Sequence record: MT799840.1
Strand: one strand, 5' to 3'
Length of the DNA: 64,000 nucleotides
The notes beneath the pieces were generated by a model. That model made no database searches and had not been told where the DNA came from. It was given only the letters and a program-made list of their open reading frames with translations. The position numbers and the translations under genes are program-made. Shown piece after piece: positions 43,689 to 63,497 of this stretch (its first letter is position 1; each line of letters begins with the position of its first letter).

Positions 43689-43915
43689 TGGAAAACCTTA
43701 CGCCGATTGAGATAGTGGCGCTATTCGACCGTTACGTATACGGACAAACGCAGGCAAAGAAAATGCTGGCGATTGCGCTACGTAATCGATATCGTGCCAA
43801 CAAACTCAACGTAGTGGACCGTATGTCGGTCCACAAACAGAACCTTTTAATAGAAGGGCCAAGAGGCACGGGTAAAACGGCGTTGATGCGTGAAGAAAAA
43901 CAGAAACAAAAGTGA
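43688..43915 (+). pseudogene. hslU: Truncated HslU (ClpY) ATPase N-terminal fragment, 75 aa
   Basis: LTPIEIVALFDRYVYGQTQAKKMLAIALRNRYR...NLLIEGPRGTGKT matches the HslU N-terminus through Walker A, then stops; next gene starts 8 nt later. Confidence 0.8.
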
Positions 43916-43923
43916 GGTAAAGG

Positions 43924-44931
43924 ATGGCGAAGCTCGTTTCGTTTTCAGCAGGGTTGGATTCCACCTGGATAATGTATCAGCTGCTATGCAAAGCACCGGC
44001 CAATGAAGCACGACATGTCCGTCCTGCGTATTTCTCCATGTGGAATGGAGGTAACGCGAACTTCATGGAAATTCTTTGTAGCGTGGCCATTGTTGAACGG
44101 TTGATGGATAGACACCATGCACAAACCGAACATGTTACATGGGCGGTGCTCGGGGAAGAGAACTTCCCGCCTGTCGTTAGCGCTAGATATGCTAACGGCT
44201 GGTCGCCTCTGGTTCAGCAGGGCAATGTTGTTAACGGTCTCGCTAAACTGATGTGTGGTATTACGCGCAAACAGCACCACGCCTATGCAGTTGTTGGTTG
44301 GAATAAGCTAGATGCGTTGGAGAATAGTCTAGAGCTGGGAGATTGGACATTAGACGAGTACGCTCGCTTAAAGAACCTTTATAGCGAACTGATGTATTTC
44401 CAAGATCATGCCGGCCGCGTTCCACCGCTTCTAACACCTGCGTGGGATAAAGAGAAACTTGAAATGTGGCAGGAGTTGCCGGAAGACATTCGTAGATTGG
44501 TGCAGGTCAGTAACTACAACAACTACGAATTCGCGATAGACCGTGAGAATAACGTGCTCATCGTTTATGCCCATCCGTCGGCAAAGTCGCAGAATTATCG
44601 TAGTCTTGGTATTACACCGTCTGTGGGATGGGAGATTAAAATTAACGATGCTTACAGACGGGTATGGTGTTCTGCTCTCGGTAGTGCTATTTCTGCTATG
44701 GGTTTGGACGTACCGACTTTTGCTAACTTTAAGGACCCGAAAAGAAATCACACAACCTTTACGGTAACTGAAGATACTGAAAGACTATTTATCACGTCAT
44801 TTACAGCAGAAGAGTGGTGCGAATATGCACCGCATTTTAAAGCGCTTCAGGAGAAAGAAAAAGAGAGAGCGAAAAATGCCAAAGCAAGTAAAGCTGTGGA
44901 CGCTCCAACTGGCGAAGTGGCGGATAGCTGA
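43924..44931 (+). CDS. PP-loop (adenine nucleotide alpha-hydrolase) protein
   Basis: LVSFSAGLDSTW is an SGGxDS-type PP-loop; no QueC Zn-cysteine cluster. Confidence 0.65.
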   Translation: MAKLVSFSAGLDSTWIMYQLLCKAPANEARHVRPAYFSMWNGGNANFMEILCSVAIVERLMDRHHAQTEHVTWAVLGEENFPPVVSARYANGWSPLVQQGNVVNGLAKLMCGITRKQHHAYAVVGWNKLDALENSLELGDWTLDEYARLKNLYSELMYFQDHAGRVPPLLTPAWDKEKLEMWQELPEDIRRLVQVSNYNNYEFAIDRENNVLIVYAHPSAKSQNYRSLGITPSVGWEIKINDAYRRVWCSALGSAISAMGLDVPTFANFKDPKRNHTTFTVTEDTERLFITSFTAEEWCEYAPHFKALQEKEKERAKNAKASKAVDAPTGEVADS

Positions 44932-45259
44932 AAAACGGAATTTGCCAAAGCTGGATATAACAGTTAAGTCGGGGCTGAAATATTTGGCACCCGACTGGGA
45001 CTTTCTGATGGACTACAAGAAGTCTGACAAAGGCCCCGACGCAGAAGCTGCGTATACCAAACGCTACCTGCAGAAACTTAGTCGGTTGTTTGATGAAGAC
45101 ACTGATAAGCTGATAGAGATTCTCCGCCGGGGCGAGGTCGTACTAATGTGCTATTGCCCACCGGGGAAATTCTGTCATCGCCACTTGCTAGTTTCTTACC
45201 TTATTGAAATCGGTGAGTGGTTCGGTTATGAAGTAATTTACATGGGCGAGTTATCGTAA
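44876..45259 (+). CDS. DUF488-family protein
   Basis: LAPDW...Y...Y and VVLMCYC...FCHRHLL motifs. Confidence 0.75.
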   Translation: MPKQVKLWTLQLAKWRIAEKRNLPKLDITVKSGLKYLAPDWDFLMDYKKSDKGPDAEAAYTKRYLQKLSRLFDEDTDKLIEILRRGEVVLMCYCPPGKFCHRHLLVSYLIEIGEWFGYEVIYMGELS

Positions 45260-45666: not shown

Positions 45667-45679
45667 CAGCGTACGAGTA

Positions 45680-45722
45680 GGCTACCACACGATCATATGT
45701 GTGGTAGCTTATTTTTTTGTTT
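45680..45722 (+). terminator. Intrinsic terminator
   Basis: GCTACCACAC...GTGTGGTAGC + T-tract. Confidence 0.75.
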
Positions 45723-45734
45723 CTGGAGGCGTTA

Positions 45735-46274
45735 ATGGCAGACCGCTATCAGCCCGACCTAACACTGAGTTCAAAAGCGCTAGTCTTAGCGCTTATCAAT
45801 CATGACAATAATCTGTCACTTACTGATAAAGAGATTGTGATTCGGGATATTGATGCGAACGCTTCACCAGACATCATCCCGAAGAACACACAGGCAAGCG
45901 TGGCCAAAGCACGTAAGCCAAATGGGAAAACCGTGACAGTCTATTATGACCGGTTAAGTGCGTCTACCGTGCTAGACAGTTTTCAGCCGCTATTGGTGTC
46001 CTTAGACGGAACCGAAACGGACATTCAGCAAATTGCCAGTGTGATTAACGGTTACTGCGGTACAAACTTGTCAGCAGCAGACTTACAGTCTGCGCCAATC
46101 GTGGTCAGCGACGATTTTACCCTGGTGAATATCACTGGCGATTCCCCAGCATGGCTTGGGACATTTGTCGCAACCCTGTTTACCAAAAATGAGTACGTTC
46201 TTTCAACTGACACTGACACGGTGCTGTGTCTGGATGAGAACACTGTGCTCGTACTGACTGACGAGGAAGAGTAA
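45735..46274 (+). CDS. Virion adaptor, stand-alone paralog-family N-terminal module
   Basis: SKALVLALINHDN, VYYDRL, SPAWLGT match the family. Confidence 0.65.
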   Translation: MADRYQPDLTLSSKALVLALINHDNNLSLTDKEIVIRDIDANASPDIIPKNTQASVAKARKPNGKTVTVYYDRLSASTVLDSFQPLLVSLDGTETDIQQIASVINGYCGTNLSAADLQSAPIVVSDDFTLVNITGDSPAWLGTFVATLFTKNEYVLSTDTDTVLCLDENTVLVLTDEEE

Positions 46275-46759
46275 TGGCCAGCCCAGTTAAAAAGCAAACA
46301 TTTGAGAGCTTACCATTTTATACCGATATCACCAACGTGAAAGATGGGATGTTGTTGTTTATCAAAGATGGGAAAGCGTATCAGTACCCGCTCGAGATGT
46401 TGGGTGTCCAGAAGGTTGCTCAGGGTGTCGTTATTCGTGATGCGGCGTATGAGTTGGAAGCGGCAGCAGCCACTGATTGGTACCTAGGACTGTCGCAACC
46501 GGAAACCGATCTCACTATTAAAAGTGATGGTGTATTGGGGGCATTTCGGTACACGCTCAACCTGACTATTCTTCAGGGAACGGGAGCCAACAAAATTAAC
46601 TGGCCTTCCAACGTGAAGTTCCCCCATGATGCATACCCGGTGCTGTCGTACCAGAAAGGGAAATCGGACATGATTACCCTGACTACAATCGACGGCGGTT
46701 ACACCTGGAAAGGTGGCGTTAGTGGAACAGGATATACAGAATGGGTAGAAACTCCTTAA
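46274..46759 (+). CDS. Tail-fibre-associated small protein
   Basis: WPSNVKFP...PVLS...GKSDMITLTTIDGGYTW is a common fibre-associated beta domain. Confidence 0.55.
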   Translation: MASPVKKQTFESLPFYTDITNVKDGMLLFIKDGKAYQYPLEMLGVQKVAQGVVIRDAAYELEAAAATDWYLGLSQPETDLTIKSDGVLGAFRYTLNLTILQGTGANKINWPSNVKFPHDAYPVLSYQKGKSDMITLTTIDGGYTWKGGVSGTGYTEWVETP

Positions 46760-49758
46760 TCGCAGTACGGACAGGGATTAACAATGCCCTGTCGATGGCC
46801 TACGGTCATCAGGACTTCGTTCGTCGAAATACCGGCTTAACTAACGACGCCCACAATGACCATTATCTGATTAACCCAGAAGGGGTGCTATCTAATAACC
46901 GGCATTTCATTGCTGACTCCATGGCAGTGTATCAACCTAATGGTGACGCCACCACAGAAGGTCAATCGTTGCTGATTATTGGGTATTGCCACATGTACAT
47001 CGCTACCAAAAACCAGATGTGGTTAGATGCGGCGATTCATGCATGGGAAGCGTACGCTACCTACTATTACGCAGGTCAGGCCATTCCCGATTCACCACAA
47101 CGTTGGATTTGTAACTGGCTAGTTAACGGTAAAGAGCCAGTGCTGGCAGACTATCCGGTGCATCCGACCGAGCCAACCCACGGTGGTTATAAGTGTGTAC
47201 CGGTAACGTTTACGAACGGGCGTTGCCAGATACCCCATGGCGCACCATTCTTTGGTGAATATCTGAACAAATTCTTTTCTGCGCATCGCGGCCATCCTAC
47301 TTGGGGTGCGGTTAATGCTGATGTACAGAAAATTAAGGAATCGGAAGACGGGTTAATTGACTGGTCTAAAGTCCCTGATTACTTAATCACCAATCCAGAG
47401 AAACCTTACGATGTAAAAGCGTGGGTGGACTGGAACACGATGCTAAACGACCCAACCGGATATACACCAATATGGGGCGGTTCTACCTCGAAAGGTCCGC
47501 GGTACGAACCTGACTGGTTTGTTGTGTGGACGGGTGAGAAGGTTCAGGATGGCGAGGTCATTGAATCTGGGTTGCCTGATGCCCAGAAAGGAACCGTACA
47601 ATTAAAGGACACCAGTATTAACGGTGTGTATTTGATTAACTACGCTTCCCAGGTACCTGTAGAGCACGGCGGATATTTGTTTGACCGCAATGAGCCGTGG
47701 CACAACCGTCCGGTTCATACCCCGTTAAAAGGGTCTGTTAACCAGATGGGTAACGCGGCAGATGCGGAAGTGTGGTTTATTGATGCCTGTTATCTGCTCT
47801 GGCGTATCACAGGTGAACCGCGCTATAAAGCCGCACTAGACTCTGTGTTCTATACAGCGCATGAATACACGTATATCGATGCGAAGGACAAGTTTTTCCG
47901 ACGTTCTAAGCTAGCCGAAACACCATTTACAGATGGTATCTCGTACGACTATAAATACCCCAGCACTGTTGAGGTCGCTTACAGTCGTGATGAAAATGGT
48001 GATATTGTGTTCCGTTCTGAGAAAGCTGTGCAGAACTTTATGGAACAGCAAGCCGTGCGTTTCAGGATAAACAGTCAATCGAAGTTACGTGTGACGTATG
48101 GCGGTGTTTGCGACAACGGTGATGCGCTTGCGTGTAAAGTGATGGTGGATATTAACCCCGTCAAAGCGGATACTGAGGAAGTAAACTGGTACGGCTGTAC
48201 GCTTCCGGGATCAACATCGATGGAAGTAGAACAGCATGACATCGATTTAGGGCATCTGGCCAGAATGACCAATCCGGCCAACGGCGAAGATTACATCATT
48301 GCCGATGCGCGAGCATGTTCGGACTACGGTGGGTGTACGTGGCAGGAGAAGTTTGAGAACAACATTTACGATGGTCGTTCAGGCACAATCGTAGAAGCGT
48401 TATTCCCGAACGACGATGCGGGTTTCATTATCGGTTTCTGGTTAACTGATGCCGGAGTTGCACCCCCACAGTCAATTGTCTATCGTGCTGATGCTGATTT
48501 CAACTTCCGTTTCGAAGATACCGACAAGTGGCGTTGGTGGTGGATGTTGCCCGCGACTAACGGGGAATGGAGACAGGTTATTATTCGCCCTGAAGACGCA
48601 ACACTCTCGGGCTATCAACCTGACCACGATACCGACGTCGAACCAAAACCGGCTGCGCCAAACTATACAACTATCGATCAGGTAACCATACTGCCCGATT
48701 CGGCTGTGGAGAATGCGCACTTTAGCTGGTATTGCGTAAACGATGTTCCGCCACTGTTTAATGCAGATGATGGCTGGACATTAACGTTTCGCATTGCAAT
48801 TCGGGGAGGTTCCGCATTTACGGGTAAAGTGGGCGATTGTACGATAAAAGATTACCGTCTTGACTCGCTCGCGTATTGTCCAGGAACGATACCGTTCTCG
48901 AACATTTATTCGGAAGGAACGTATCAGCTAGGTGCATGGCACGGGATGCCGTATCCTGGCTATCAGTATCCGTTTATGTACACCATACACACCGATGATC
49001 GCTACAAAGACTGGCTCTTAAATCAGATTCGGTTTATGCGCGATTCACAAACCAACTACCAAGCGCAGATAGGTGAGTTAGGTCCAGGTTGTGCGGCGTA
49101 TATTTGGAACCGCTGGGATAACTACTCTTACGGCCCGGCAGATACGTGGACAACGTTCCATTGGGGCGATGGACATCCGTGGGCAGGTTATCAGCCACGC
49201 GCGTATAACGCCGCTGCGCGTTGTTGGTACGAATTAGTTGTGCGTGGTAAAGAGGTTCCACCAGAGCTAGTAGAGTACGTTGAAAATTGGGCTAAGTGGC
49301 TCGTAGGGTTCTTAGACCGCTTTGACAACCACACGCCGAATGAATTCCCTACGGCACCAAATAAACCGGTATGGGTAGAGAATGATTTCACAGCACATAT
49401 GTGTGCGCTCTGGATAGCAGGCAGCGCTTATGCAGCAATGGCTGGCTGTACAGTGGAAGGGTTGAGCCGTATTATGGATATGGGGATGAAGGAGATGGGT
49501 GACAACTTCACCGTCACCGACATTCCAGGAAAAGCCATTAACGGTGCCTGGTCTCCGTGGGCAAATCCTACCACGGATAACGGTCAGGCTTTTGGGTTTT
49601 ATACTGGAGAAGCGATGCGTGCAATCGGGTTGTATCTCCTCTATAAAGAACACGGCCCAGGACATGATATTTATCGTGACTTGGCAATACCCGACCACAC
49701 AACAGCTTCACTCGATATAACGTTTACTATCCCAGACGATCCGCTCGAAACTAATTAA
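46741..49758 (+). CDS. Large virion fibre/appendage protein with GH8-like glycoside hydrolase motifs
   Basis: TTEGQS (E73) and NAADAEVW...LWRITGEPRY (D341) resemble GH8 SEGQ and SAxDGD motifs; central Trp-rich CBM-like region. Confidence 0.65.
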   Translation: MGRNSLIAVRTGINNALSMAYGHQDFVRRNTGLTNDAHNDHYLINPEGVLSNNRHFIADSMAVYQPNGDATTEGQSLLIIGYCHMYIATKNQMWLDAAIHAWEAYATYYYAGQAIPDSPQRWICNWLVNGKEPVLADYPVHPTEPTHGGYKCVPVTFTNGRCQIPHGAPFFGEYLNKFFSAHRGHPTWGAVNADVQKIKESEDGLIDWSKVPDYLITNPEKPYDVKAWVDWNTMLNDPTGYTPIWGGSTSKGPRYEPDWFVVWTGEKVQDGEVIESGLPDAQKGTVQLKDTSINGVYLINYASQVPVEHGGYLFDRNEPWHNRPVHTPLKGSVNQMGNAADAEVWFIDACYLLWRITGEPRYKAALDSVFYTAHEYTYIDAKDKFFRRSKLAETPFTDGISYDYKYPSTVEVAYSRDENGDIVFRSEKAVQNFMEQQAVRFRINSQSKLRVTYGGVCDNGDALACKVMVDINPVKADTEEVNWYGCTLPGSTSMEVEQHDIDLGHLARMTNPANGEDYIIADARACSDYGGCTWQEKFENNIYDGRSGTIVEALFPNDDAGFIIGFWLTDAGVAPPQSIVYRADADFNFRFEDTDKWRWWWMLPATNGEWRQVIIRPEDATLSGYQPDHDTDVEPKPAAPNYTTIDQVTILPDSAVENAHFSWYCVNDVPPLFNADDGWTLTFRIAIRGGSAFTGKVGDCTIKDYRLDSLAYCPGTIPFSNIYSEGTYQLGAWHGMPYPGYQYPFMYTIHTDDRYKDWLLNQIRFMRDSQTNYQAQIGELGPGCAAYIWNRWDNYSYGPADTWTTFHWGDGHPWAGYQPRAYNAAARCWYELVVRGKEVPPELVEYVENWAKWLVGFLDRFDNHTPNEFPTAPNKPVWVENDFTAHMCALWIAGSAYAAMAGCTVEGLSRIMDMGMKEMGDNFTVTDIPGKAINGAWSPWANPTTDNGQAFGFYTGEAMRAIGLYLLYKEHGPGHDIYRDLAIPDHTTASLDITFTIPDDPLETN

Positions 49759-49763
49759 GTGTA

Positions 49764-49806
49764 TACCAGCTATCCTTCGGGGTGGCTGGTACGCTTTATT
49801 TTATTT
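49764..49806 (+). terminator. Intrinsic terminator
   Basis: TACCAGCTATCC-TTCG-GGGTGGCTGGTA + T-rich tail. Confidence 0.85.
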
Positions 49807-61128: not shown

Positions 61129-61959
61129 TTGATGATCAACTATGCTAAGCCGTCAAACGAGTTGGTCTTTGACCTCATTAACCGGGATAACCCGAACCTA
61201 CCTATTAAAGCGTCGCCGGCAAACTGCTACGTGGAGAAAGTGACGCAGGTTCCCGTTAATGCAGCTTCCAACAACCGCAATACGTCGGCACGCTTGCGCG
61301 GTATTCAGGGTTCCGGATTTCGAGACGCAATCACCGTTTACTACGACCGTGTGAACTTAGCGCGGTTATTGCCGTGGGGTCCTTCTGTCCAGGCGCAGTT
61401 CGTCACGTTTGACGCGCCCAACCTCCACTCAGCCTTTTCGGTGCTCTTGGATACTTACGGAGTAAACTTCTCTGCAATCGATATCTATAACCTCCCACTG
61501 GCGGGTCCCAATACCCCAAATTACAGCAATACACAGAACATCGTAGCGCTATCGACATCTCCGGCTTATATCGGTTCTGCGACGTTGCGTTATAACCGTG
61601 GTTTACCGGTACTAGACACTTCGGTGAAATCGGATGTCTTGAATGCGATTCAAGAGCCTATTTCACCGTCTCTCGGTAAGAAGTGTATTGATTTGTTGAC
61701 GTACGGTATTGACTTTACCGCGTATAAAAACCTACTGACAGTAGATGCTTCTGGCCTACCGCAGTGGGCTGGTTTGCGTAAGGTGTTGGATGACCTGGGT
61801 ATTCCGAACTACGCGGGGCCACTGAACAGTAACACCGTTCAGGATGTGCCGACATCCACCGCTCAGTTCGCTAACAAATCGTACGACCGCGTGGTTATCC
61901 AAACGGGTATCGATGAGGAAGGCGTGAAAGGCGTGGCGTACTACCACTATAACAGCTAA
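61129..61959 (+). CDS. Virion paralog-family protein
   Basis: PSNELVFDLINRDN, YYDRV, GVAYYHYN. Confidence 0.8.
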   Translation: MMINYAKPSNELVFDLINRDNPNLPIKASPANCYVEKVTQVPVNAASNNRNTSARLRGIQGSGFRDAITVYYDRVNLARLLPWGPSVQAQFVTFDAPNLHSAFSVLLDTYGVNFSAIDIYNLPLAGPNTPNYSNTQNIVALSTSPAYIGSATLRYNRGLPVLDTSVKSDVLNAIQEPISPSLGKKCIDLLTYGIDFTAYKNLLTVDASGLPQWAGLRKVLDDLGIPNYAGPLNSNTVQDVPTSTAQFANKSYDRVVIQTGIDEEGVKGVAYYHYNS

Positions 61960-62006: not shown

Positions 62007-63497
62007 ATGCTATTTTACTCGAAGGAGTCGGCACTGCTTGTATACGACCAAGTCAATCGGGATAACCCTGATTTAGTTGTTAAGCTGACGCCGGCTATCG
62101 CTGCTTTAACCGGTGGCCCAACTTCAGTTACGTTAAACCAACGTAACACCAAAGCTGTTTTCACCGGGTATCCAGGGACAGGTGTACAAGGTAATGTTAC
62201 CGTGTACTACGACCGGATTAACCTGGCCACTTTATTTAATTTTGTGCCGACTGTGGCTATCAAAGATACAGTCTTAACGGTACGAGACGCGCTACCTGCA
62301 ATAAACGACGCATTGGGGCTTACATTGGTTGCGTCAGACCTGCAGTCGCCTGATGCAAGTCTACCTAAACCGAGCGCTTCGCCGCAGACGTTGAAATTAA
62401 ATATCTCAGGTAATTGCCCTGCGTTTACAGGCAGCTTAACGATACGTTATACCGTCCCGAGCGGTGCAATTTACCCCGATTCTGGACCTGGCCCTAAAAC
62501 GTTGCTGCAAGGTAACACTATCGCGGGTTATTTCGGAACAACCACAATTGCAGAGTTGTTTACACACTCTCAACTTCTTAATGCCACTATATCGGCCGGT
62601 GCGTTACCACCGGTACATTCTGGTGCCGAAGGTTGGTACAAGTTCTTTTACCAGGGTAGGGTTATTTACCTTCCGATCAGTCCTGTCGCTAGCTCCATCT
62701 CCTGGAATACGTTATATACAAACGGACTCGTTTACGGAACAGATGATAATGGTAAATACCCTGCGGCGACGCCCGTTAACCAGGGACGCATCATTAGCTT
62801 TACAGGCGCAGACAACAAAAGGTTTTACTTCCGTGTTCGTCTACCTAGTGCCGGGAAAGACCCATACGTCAGCGGCACCCCAACTGCCGCTGAGTTAGCA
62901 GGTAGTGAGTTTGAGATGTTCAACTTTCTGTATAATGGAACGTGGGACAAACCGATTAACAGTTACTGGGCGCTGTTCTGTTTATTGAAAGATACACTGA
63001 AGACCAACGTCGCCAATCATCGTATGGCGACGTTGTCTGGAGCCAGTTGGACAAACTTAGAAAAATCATCGAGCGCGGGCAACTACTACTGGTTCCCGGT
63101 GCTAGAGTTGGTGGATAAGTCCACGGTTACCTTGGGCTTAGAAGATATCCACGGCGCGGTAGATTACAGTCTCCAACCGTGCAGCGTGTCCGCAGAAAAC
63201 ACATTTAGTCTCAAGCCGTTAGTGCTCGGTAATCCAGATACTACCGATTTCGAACCGGTAGTTGTTACTTCAGAAAACAGTTTCGCACTGCATCCGCCCG
63301 CATTAATGCTGCCAAAGACTGTCGATTTTCAACCTGTGGCCGTTACTGCGGAAAACAGTTTCGCACTGCATCCGCCCGCATTAATGCTGCCAAAGACTGT
63401 CGATTTTCAACCTATTGCGGCTACCGCTGAAATGTATACGCCGCCTGATAATGTATCGTTAACGACCCTTAATGATGAACTGGACGGCTTTAAGTAG
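62007..63497 (+). CDS. Virion paralog-family protein with extra domain and C-terminal 26-aa repeats
   Basis: Family N-module, GPGPKTLLQGN domain, repeat stalk, terminal LNDELDGFK. Confidence 0.8.
   Translation: MLFYSKESALLVYDQVNRDNPDLVVKLTPAIAALTGGPTSVTLNQRNTKAVFTGYPGTGVQGNVTVYYDRINLATLFNFVPTVAIKDTVLTVRDALPAINDALGLTLVASDLQSPDASLPKPSASPQTLKLNISGNCPAFTGSLTIRYTVPSGAIYPDSGPGPKTLLQGNTIAGYFGTTTIAELFTHSQLLNATISAGALPPVHSGAEGWYKFFYQGRVIYLPISPVASSISWNTLYTNGLVYGTDDNGKYPAATPVNQGRIISFTGADNKRFYFRVRLPSAGKDPYVSGTPTAAELAGSEFEMFNFLYNGTWDKPINSYWALFCLLKDTLKTNVANHRMATLSGASWTNLEKSSSAGNYYWFPVLELVDKSTVTLGLEDIHGAVDYSLQPCSVSAENTFSLKPLVLGNPDTTDFEPVVVTSENSFALHPPALMLPKTVDFQPVAVTAENSFALHPPALMLPKTVDFQPIAATAEMYTPPDNVSLTTLNDELDGFK
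63195..63428 (+). repeat. 78-bp (26-aa) in-frame tandem repeat, 3 units
   Basis: Units start at 63195, 63273, 63351; 63273-63335 is identical to 63351-63413. Confidence 0.95.

Follow-up and report, generated by a model that had tools for sequence, protein, structure and literature searches.

Positions 45735–49758 of a 64,000-nucleotide stretch of sequence record MT799840.1 (the window, by which we mean that whole stretch at its full length) carry three plus-strand genes of Salmonella phage JN03, an SPN3US-like jumbo phage of the genus Seoulvirus. The best explanation of this region is an autonomous late-type transcription unit that encodes a three-protein tail appendage. As an overall account, we consider it somewhat probable that the appendage carries a docked enzyme with a glycosidase-type barrel, which cuts a surface or matrix glycan. 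The unit encodes a 179-amino-acid (aa) protein with an N-terminal DUF7941 module (gene 1, 45735–46274), a 161-aa small adaptor or fibre protein (gene 2, 46274–46759) and a 1005-aa tail-associated protein with a predicted (alpha/alpha)6 glycosidase-like fold (gene 3, 46741–49758). These are the counterparts of SPN3US_0122, SPN3US_0123 and SPN3US_0124 (gp122, gp123 and gp124), for which the database labels are 'virion structural protein', 'tail fiber protein' and 'tail protein' or 'tail-associated protein', respectively; in the record of Proteus phage 7, the large protein is labelled 'glycosyl hydrolase'.

Family and conservation of the large protein

The gene 3 protein matches phrog_2871, 'tail protein' (E-value (E) 0, 1516 bits), and is homologous over its full length to the family of phi92 gp141 (41% identity to gp141 over residues 9–992 of 1005). 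The family forms 259 clusters in a 90% database, has 253 representatives among 1.84 billion proteins and occurs in 541 phage records. Nearly all members, at 45–98% identity, keep the whole architecture of ~920–1000 aa. Because this architecture of ~950 aa is conserved as a whole, the large beta-rich insertions of the protein are ancestral to the family and not recent additions, a point on which the preliminary description of this DNA, with its large inserted binding modules, is not supported.

The motifs that had first drawn attention to the protein lie at residues 69–81 (containing E73), 338–362 (containing D341) and 597–615. All 61 relatives in a set with identities down to 45% carry both E73 and D341. 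In a more distant set of 49 relatives, reaching ~18% identity, E73, Q75, D341, W345 and D793 are each kept in at least 90% of sequences and D593 is invariant. The conservation of the E73 and D341 motifs is thus beyond chance. Two clusters of polar residues are invariant as well, one formed by N52, N53, R54 and H55 and the other by R316, N317, H321, N322 and R323.

Homologues are located in the tail-fibre loci of phi92-like, rV5-like, P2-like and T7-like phages and of Ackermannviridae, and some are fused to the Tail_P2_I baseplate protein. A Foldseek search of viral models returned only relatives from the family itself, labelled tail fibre.

Predicted fold of the large protein

The AlphaFold2 model of the full-length protein is of high quality (predicted local distance difference test (pLDDT) 90.3, predicted template modelling score (pTM) 0.87) and contains 11 long helices, at residues 2–29, 72–89, 92–109, 340–357, 360–378, 756–777, 817–834, 841–860, 885–901, 908–921 and 952–971. 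They make up five clear hairpins plus one N-terminal helix and fall into three segments, which are split by two beta-rich blocks at ~111–335 and ~381–740 with a total of ~585 residues. With high confidence, the model therefore predicts a helical barrel of (alpha/alpha)6 type that is assembled from three sequence segments and interrupted by two beta-rich insertions.

Barrel segment 1 spans residues 1–110 (46741–47070) with the first three long helices and E73 (codon 46957–46959), and segment 2 spans residues 336–380 (47746–47880) with helices 340–357 and 360–378 and D341 (codon 47761–47763); both are drawn from the model, from conservation and from profile alignment by hhalign. In the model, both E73 and D341 are found at the N-terminus of a helix that opens a hairpin. 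Segment 3, with six long helices and D793, covers residues 741–975 (48961–49665) and was delimited with a fragment model and Foldseek. Between them lie insertion 1, residues 111–335 (47071–47745), which was assigned from the secondary structure of the model (DSSP) and its family-wide conservation, and insertion 2, residues 381–740 (47881–48960), which the model and low-scoring Foldseek matches resolve into several beta-sandwich-like units.

In a full-length Foldseek search of the PDB, multi-domain beta proteins with template modelling scores (TM) <0.2 prevailed, and barrel families were not rankable; the search also gave glycoside hydrolase family (GH) 116 and the GH48 cellulase Cel48F at probabilities of 0.99–1.00 (1.00 for Cel48F). 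For the beta blocks, this search returned lectins, discoidins, jelly-rolls and glycan-binding proteins at low TM. For ranking the barrel families, we built a separate model of residues 735–1005 (pLDDT 91.2). In the PDB search with this model, all of the top 13 places were taken by GH48 cellulases (E 5e-4 to 1.4e-2, query TM (TMq) 0.39–0.49, 12–18% identity), with match probabilities of 0.97–1.00 (1.00 for 12 of the 13). Below them ranked GH105, a polysaccharide lyase, GH76, YihS, GH88, GH8 and 2-epimerases, at probabilities of 0.98–1.00. The GH8 structures included an endoglucanase of P. putida (4q2b; probability 1.00, TMq 0.49, root-mean-square deviation 4.7–5.1) and BcsZ (7f81; probability 0.93). 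GH48, a family of cellulases, and GH8 belong to the same clan, GH-M, in the CAZy classification.

Weak profile matches point to the same superfamily of six-hairpin glycosidases. Among the 49 distant relatives, the only recurring Pfam matches at E up to 10 were to GH76 (three relatives), GH127 (two) and GH47 (two); further weak matches included GlcNAc 2-epimerase and C5-epimerase. Two candidate matches of the large protein itself, to GH47 (0.079) and to a fluorescent protein (1.3), were discarded as noise. Overall, the predicted fold is six-hairpin glycosidase-like and nearest to clan GH-M, with GH48 as the closest structural neighbour in the fragment search and Cel48F found in the full-length search as well. 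The preliminary description had proposed an (alpha/alpha)6 hydrolase of family GH8 with inserted modules, to be checked by AlphaFold and Foldseek against that family. A split helical barrel is predicted by the AlphaFold model and supported by the Foldseek matches of its C-terminal half, and GH8 is indeed among these matches; the nearest fold, however, is GH48, below which GH8 is ranked.

A mobile tryptophan-rich module

Within insertion 2, residues ~517–676 (48289–48768), which contain the invariant D593, independently match phrog_23426 (E 3.4e-45). The same Trp-rich module recurs at 45–50% identity in other phage proteins, where it occupies different positions: C-terminal in a 502-aa protein (P0188), in the middle of a second (P0181) and N-terminal in a third (P0185). 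In the search of viral models, a 502-aa 'tail fiber' protein of Erwinia phage MM7 was likewise aligned to this part of the model. The module is also present in Erwinia phage Roscha1, in a 'proximal tail fibre subunit' whose gene (L010:2071-3579) lies shortly before the partner gene and the enzyme.

From its own PHROG and its recurrence in other tail-fibre proteins, the Trp-rich stretch is an autonomous, mobile module, in keeping with its earlier recognition as a distinct region. A search of PDB sequences with the module gave no match. The beta-sandwich character of the predicted structure makes a carbohydrate-binding role plausible, and a role in fibre-to-fibre docking is equally plausible.

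A putative adaptor is paired with the predicted enzyme across phage lineages

Gene 2 matches phrog_9017, 'tail fiber protein' (E 1.3e-31), and its product is the counterpart of SPN3US gp123 (40% identical) and of phi92 gp140; a search of PDB sequences with the protein gave no match. Its C-terminal domain of ~100 aa (residues ~50–154, 46421–46735) is the part that recurs. In 13 of 13 genomic contexts, the gene directly upstream of the enzyme ends in a domain of this type, and the 12 contexts other than JN03 were recognised by phmmer at E 1e-14 to 1e-29. The 13 contexts comprise JN03, SPN3US, an Erwinia Seoulvirus, the phi92-like Bas61, the rV5-like FV3, Erwinia phage Roscha1, Cronobacter phage GAP52, the T7-like Aeromonas phage Atoyac14, Vibrio phage VAP7 (Ackermannviridae), the 347-kilobase (kb) phage SP27, a 53-kb Salmonella phage, a P2-like Pseudomonas prophage and a marine Spongiibacter prophage. 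The partner proteins have N-termini that vary by lineage, and those that could be recognised are virion anchors, namely Phage_T7_tail (3e-12) for Atoyac14 and Tail_spike_N (3e-10) for FV3.

The two genes are also distributed together. The gene 2 domain was found in 516 phage records, once in each, compared with 541 records for the enzyme, and the counts for domain and enzyme by taxon are close to equal (240 and 242 in Escherichia, 60 and 62 in Vibrio, 33 and 33 in Erwinia, 23 and 23 in Campylobacter). The adaptor–enzyme pair of the P2-like prophage comes after baseplate genes J and I. In the 53-kb Salmonella phage or prophage (L005:7378-10958), the pair stands between a tail terminator gene on one side and two Big_2 proteins and a tail tube gene on the other, which is an unusual location for a fibre gene.

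From this conserved adjacency and co-distribution, we infer that the pairing is a cassette of an anchor plus a docked enzyme. The preliminary description had noted an adaptor in the module and assigned that part to gene 1; the universal partner of the enzyme is instead gene 2, a pairing that had been overlooked.

Virion association

Mass spectrometry of SPN3US places the orthologue of the large protein, which is 97% identical, in the particle, in agreement with the initial proposal that the protein is displayed on the virion. SPN3US proteomics found gp124 (113.7 kDa) in purified virions, where 73 spectra and 39 unique peptides covered 48% of it, and did not flag it as a head protein. Its abundance index is 0.64, compared with 0.93 for the portal, which is present in 12 copies; very roughly, this ratio suggests six to twelve copies of gp124. 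In a second proteomics table, gp123, the counterpart of the putative adaptor, was detected in three of three particle preparations.

Gene 1 and divergence from SPN3US

The gene 1 product matches Pfam DUF7941 (PF25613) at E 4.5e-19 and 69.4 bits, well above the gathering cut-off of 27, and also matches phrog_2935. The match covers residues 8–151 of the protein and positions 3–154 of the 276 in the profile, that is, the N-terminal part of DUF7941 only. Paralogues with this domain are found elsewhere in the window, at 61153–61578 and 62196–62435, as expected if gene 1 carries a paralogous N-terminal module, which had been noticed before. Those two genes form the start of the array that corresponds to SPN3US gp138–154, 'paralog family B'. 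According to the 2026 structure paper on phage Goslar, DUF7941 is exclusive to chimalliviruses and forms head-to-tail filaments in vitro; in some proteins it is fused to carbohydrate-binding or hydrolase domains, and it probably attaches to the peripheral baseplate. Judged by its profile match, gene 1 carries the chimallivirus DUF7941 attachment or filament module.

Within the unit, it is the two companions of the enzyme that vary between JN03 and SPN3US. The flanks of the region are 95–97% identical in the two phages, and blastn shows a divergent block at 45842–46779 that takes in most of gene 1, the whole of gene 2 and codons 1–13 of gene 3. At the protein level, identity to SPN3US is 49% for gene 1 and 40% for gene 2, whereas the enzyme gene is ~97% identical in DNA and its product is 96.6% identical to that of the SPN3US-type phage SPFM11. 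Compared with the Erwinia Seoulvirus, the identities are 57% for gene 1, 37% for gene 2 and 83% for the enzyme. For genes 1 and 2, EC001 and Lh1B, both of which were isolated on E. coli, have the same allele as JN03, and ~30 Salmonella phages and Proteus phage 7 have that of SPN3US. The 4.1-kb region as a whole matches JN03 at 100% identity and the Escherichia phages EC001 and Lh1B at 97.9%, and ~30 SPN3US-type phages match it at ~97% over 76% of its length only. A second break in colinearity with SPN3US lies at 43731–43881, where JN03 lacks, or carries a replacement for, extra small genes of SPN3US; these include one that is annotated as a head maturation protease in RefSeq.

Variable companions around a constant enzyme argue for a conserved target. 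According to the BASEL paper, the conserved fibre genes for glycan hydrolysis in this locus are probably directed at glycans that are themselves conserved.

Proposed mechanism and alternative readings

In the mechanism that we propose, the gene 2 protein would be the anchor on which the enzyme docks, and in JN03 the DUF7941 protein would link the gene 2–gene 3 pair to DUF7941 filaments or to the peripheral baseplate. The beta modules would hold the polymer, and the enzyme would cleave a surface or matrix glycan, probably with inversion, using the Glu as acid and the Asp as helper as in clan GH-M. The target would probably be a glycan that is conserved among gammaproteobacterial hosts and not a strain-specific one.

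Several observations weigh against this account. The large protein gave no match in Pfam, NCBIfam or PDB sequences, whether searched whole, as five pieces or as a profile of 61 sequences, and its structural matches amount to half a barrel with TM ~0.45 and modest E-values. The literature searched contains no report of activity or binding for a member of the family. The physical complex of the gene 2 and gene 3 proteins is deduced from synteny alone. In SPN3US, proteomics assigned 20 DUF7941 paralogues to the head, a tailless mutant containing them, and this assignment conflicts with the baseplate model for Goslar; gp122, the counterpart of gene 1, was barely detected and in one particle preparation only. 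Lastly, the 2026 structure of the phi92 virion left three sets of fibres unmodelled; gp140 was considered there, and gp141 goes unmentioned and was not assigned to any fibre density.

A bolder extension of the proposed mechanism seems less probable. In it, phi92 gp141 and SPN3US gp124 would be the founders of an uncurated GH family of clan GH-M type with two nested beta blocks, docked on a universal adaptor of ~100 aa and used by phages of at least 10 lineages (myoviruses, siphoviruses and podoviruses) on a single glycan that many gammaproteobacteria have in their envelopes or biofilm matrices, with cellulose or modified cellulose as one candidate among several.

Among the competing explanations, a non-catalytic receptor-binding protein, in which an enzyme-derived fold binds a host glycan and the beta modules serve as lectins, accommodates the absence of a known activity in any member of the family as well as the many beta-sandwich modules with their lectin-like and discoidin-like fold matches. 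It also fits the finding that a related Vequintavirus can do without several of its tail-fibre genes on E. coli K-12, which may or may not include the homologue. We nevertheless regard it as unlikely, because two carboxylates at helix N-termini and their surrounding polar residues are kept over identities of 18–98%, as they would be in an active site, and binding alone rarely conserves a pair of acids so strictly.

The protein could also be an (alpha/alpha)6 enzyme of another chemistry that acts on an acidic polysaccharide, such as a lyase or an enzyme resembling unsaturated-uronyl hydrolases or epimerases. GH105, GH88, the polysaccharide lyase, YihS and the 2-epimerases all appear in the structural ranking at 0.98–1.00, the weak Pfam matches include GlcNAc 2-epimerase and C5-epimerase, and the invariant Asn, Arg and His clusters would suit anionic sugars. 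Against this stand the monopoly of GH48 over the 13 top places and the Glu/Asp pair, which matches the motif positions of clan GH-M, and this chemistry seems rather unlikely.

The reading offered initially, which takes the protein for a true GH8 endoglucanase that acts on the cellulose of biofilms or on some other beta-glucan and has carbohydrate-binding modules inserted, is in our view distinctly improbable. As reference we used bcsZ from E. coli K-12 (NC_000913.3; accession in PMC5635171) together with database relatives, giving a BcsZ-clade GH8 alignment of 21 sequences that is shallow (at least 58% identity) and limits the profile test. The spacing between the two acids is as contrasting as had been described: E73 and D341 are 268 residues apart, compared with 61 for E55 and D116, the invariant pair in E. 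coli BcsZ. In hhalign comparisons, the N-terminal piece of the protein placed E73 opposite BcsZ E55 (E 0.0054, probability 6.7%, score 24.6) and the middle piece placed D341 opposite BcsZ D116 (E 0.011, probability 3.8%, score 20.7). These two alignments are colinear and exceed column-shuffled nulls (13.8 ± 2.4 and 13.4 ± 2.6, respectively), and none of the 40 shuffles attained either of the real scores. The GH8 reading further draws on the presence of 4q2b among the fold matches and on the top-ranked fold, which shares clan GH-M and is that of a cellulase family.

The profile tests, on the other hand, went against GH8 throughout. PF01270, the Pfam model of the family, was never matched at E up to 10 by the whole protein, the five pieces or any of the 49 relatives, and the Pfam scans of the large protein and these relatives gave no GH48 match either. 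Aligned with the shallow set of 21 BcsZ-clade sequences, the protein reached a probability of 0.3% (E 0.2), with only the D341 region opposite D116; nothing significant came from the single BcsZ sequence or from TreF (GH37) as a control. The C-terminal half does not align with that of GH8, since the C-terminal piece matched the C-terminal half of BcsZ off register (E 0.49), and the beta pieces gave nothing. For the C-terminal catalytic base, D793 is a candidate only, by virtue of its conservation in at least 90% of the distant relatives. The motif likeness to BcsZ is thus real and slightly better than chance, but these two motifs are also what the GH8 hypothesis was built on, so that testing them provides no independent evidence. 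The comparisons do not establish membership of GH8, and the cellulose label is likewise unsupported.

That the module decorates the head or neck instead of the tail is very unlikely, given that gp124 was not flagged as a head protein in SPN3US, that the cassette follows the baseplate J and I genes in the P2-like prophage and lies in tail-fibre loci elsewhere, that the recognisable partner N-termini are tail-fibre or tailspike anchors and that fusions to Tail_P2_I exist.

Layout of the transcription unit

The preliminary description of three coupled plus-strand genes bounded by terminators agrees with the open reading frames and with the hairpins that we located. Genes 1 and 2 overlap by one base (TAATG) and genes 2 and 3 by 19 bases. 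A terminator-like hairpin at 45675–45714, on the plus strand, closes the preceding unit; it has a 17-pair stem and a T run, followed by GGAGG. A second plus-strand hairpin of this kind, at 49764–49791, closes the unit itself with a 12-pair stem that includes six G–C pairs. A scan for hairpins found six sites where 4.4 were expected; what counts for the two flanking hairpins is therefore their position and length only.

The GGAGG lies 6 nucleotides upstream of the gene 1 ATG at 45735. An in-frame TTG is present at 45717, 18 bases 5' of this ATG and within the T run of the terminator. Judged by these signals, gene 1 more probably starts at the ATG, which has the GGAGG ahead of it. Positions 44825–45259 of the window, a short way upstream of the module, encode a DUF488 protein (Pfam DUF488-N3a, E 1.1e-11).

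Comparison with known systems

The module is a virion-associated, putatively glycan-active tail appendage with an adaptor, which is a known kind of system, and both the family and its glycosidase label were known already. As far as the literature searched shows, the fold class, the split-barrel layout, the invariant acid pair, the mobile Trp-rich module and the universal pairing with an adaptor have not been described.

Most characterised phage depolymerases are trimeric beta-helix tailspikes directed against variable capsules or O-antigens. The family studied here differs in its predicted helical-barrel fold and in its high conservation across phages of different hosts. More than 500 sequenced phages have it, among them the phi92, rV5 and SPN3US groups that are used in host-range and therapy work. 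Knowledge of its substrate would reveal which conserved surface glycan is the first that many phages encounter, and would also assign an unplaced component of the fibre apparatus of phi92-type and jumbo phages. The adaptor–enzyme pairing meanwhile provides a simple annotation rule for both genes.

Among the closest known systems is that of phi92, whose gp141 is 41% identical to the gene 3 protein over its full length. It is adjoined upstream by gp140, which shares the C-terminal domain of gene 2; both belong to the 'Swiss army knife' tail-fibre locus and have counterparts in rV5 or PVP-SE1. A review citing Schwarzer 2012 lists phi92 gp141 as 'Glycosidase', and in the BASEL paper the Bas61 orthologue is annotated as a lateral tail fibre with glycosidase domains; a published structure, location or activity for gp141 was not found in the literature searched. 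Unlike in phi92, the JN03 pair is preceded by a DUF7941 gene and isolated between terminators, far from other tail genes. The enzyme of JN03 and the SPN3US-type phages also has ~40 residues more than gp141 (~206–247; window positions 47356–47481), within beta insertion 1.

Among cellular enzymes, GH48 cellulases such as Cel48F and CelS are the best structural match to the C-terminal half-barrel. GH48 enzymes are large (alpha/alpha)6 proteins with big loop insertions and are secreted or cellulosomal. The present protein differs in that the likeness reaches TM ~0.45 over half a barrel, in that its insertions are whole beta domains and in that it is part of a virion. BcsZ aligns weakly with the protein at the Glu and Asp motifs, in the same order, and going by the model would share the (alpha/alpha)6 fold, but is a periplasmic enzyme of 368 aa with a spacing of 61 residues where the JN03 protein has 268.

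The 'fibre cloud' of Goslar offers a parallel for gene 1, which has an N-terminal DUF7941 globular domain and a linker like Goslar gp23. In that chimallivirus, the cloud includes gp22, for which filament formation and association with the baseplate were proposed, and gp23; gp86, gp92 and gp161, with fused glycan-binding or hydrolase domains, tie DUF7941 to carbohydrate-active domains. In JN03, by contrast, DUF7941 is carried by a separate 179-aa protein, and the gene 2 adaptor would stand between it and the enzyme.

Lastly, T7-like and other phages have two-component receptor-binding systems of an anchor and a docked enzyme, for example the adaptor–tailspike pairs of K1-5- or SP6-type and KP32-type phages. 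The JN03 cassette resembles them in having a short putative anchor, a lineage-specific N-terminal attachment domain and a separately encoded enzyme, and the partner protein in Atoyac14 carries a T7 tail-fibre N-terminal domain. It differs in its enzyme, which is predicted to be an (alpha/alpha)6 barrel and not a trimeric beta-helix, and in the dedicated C-terminal domain of ~100 aa through which the adaptor would make contact with it.

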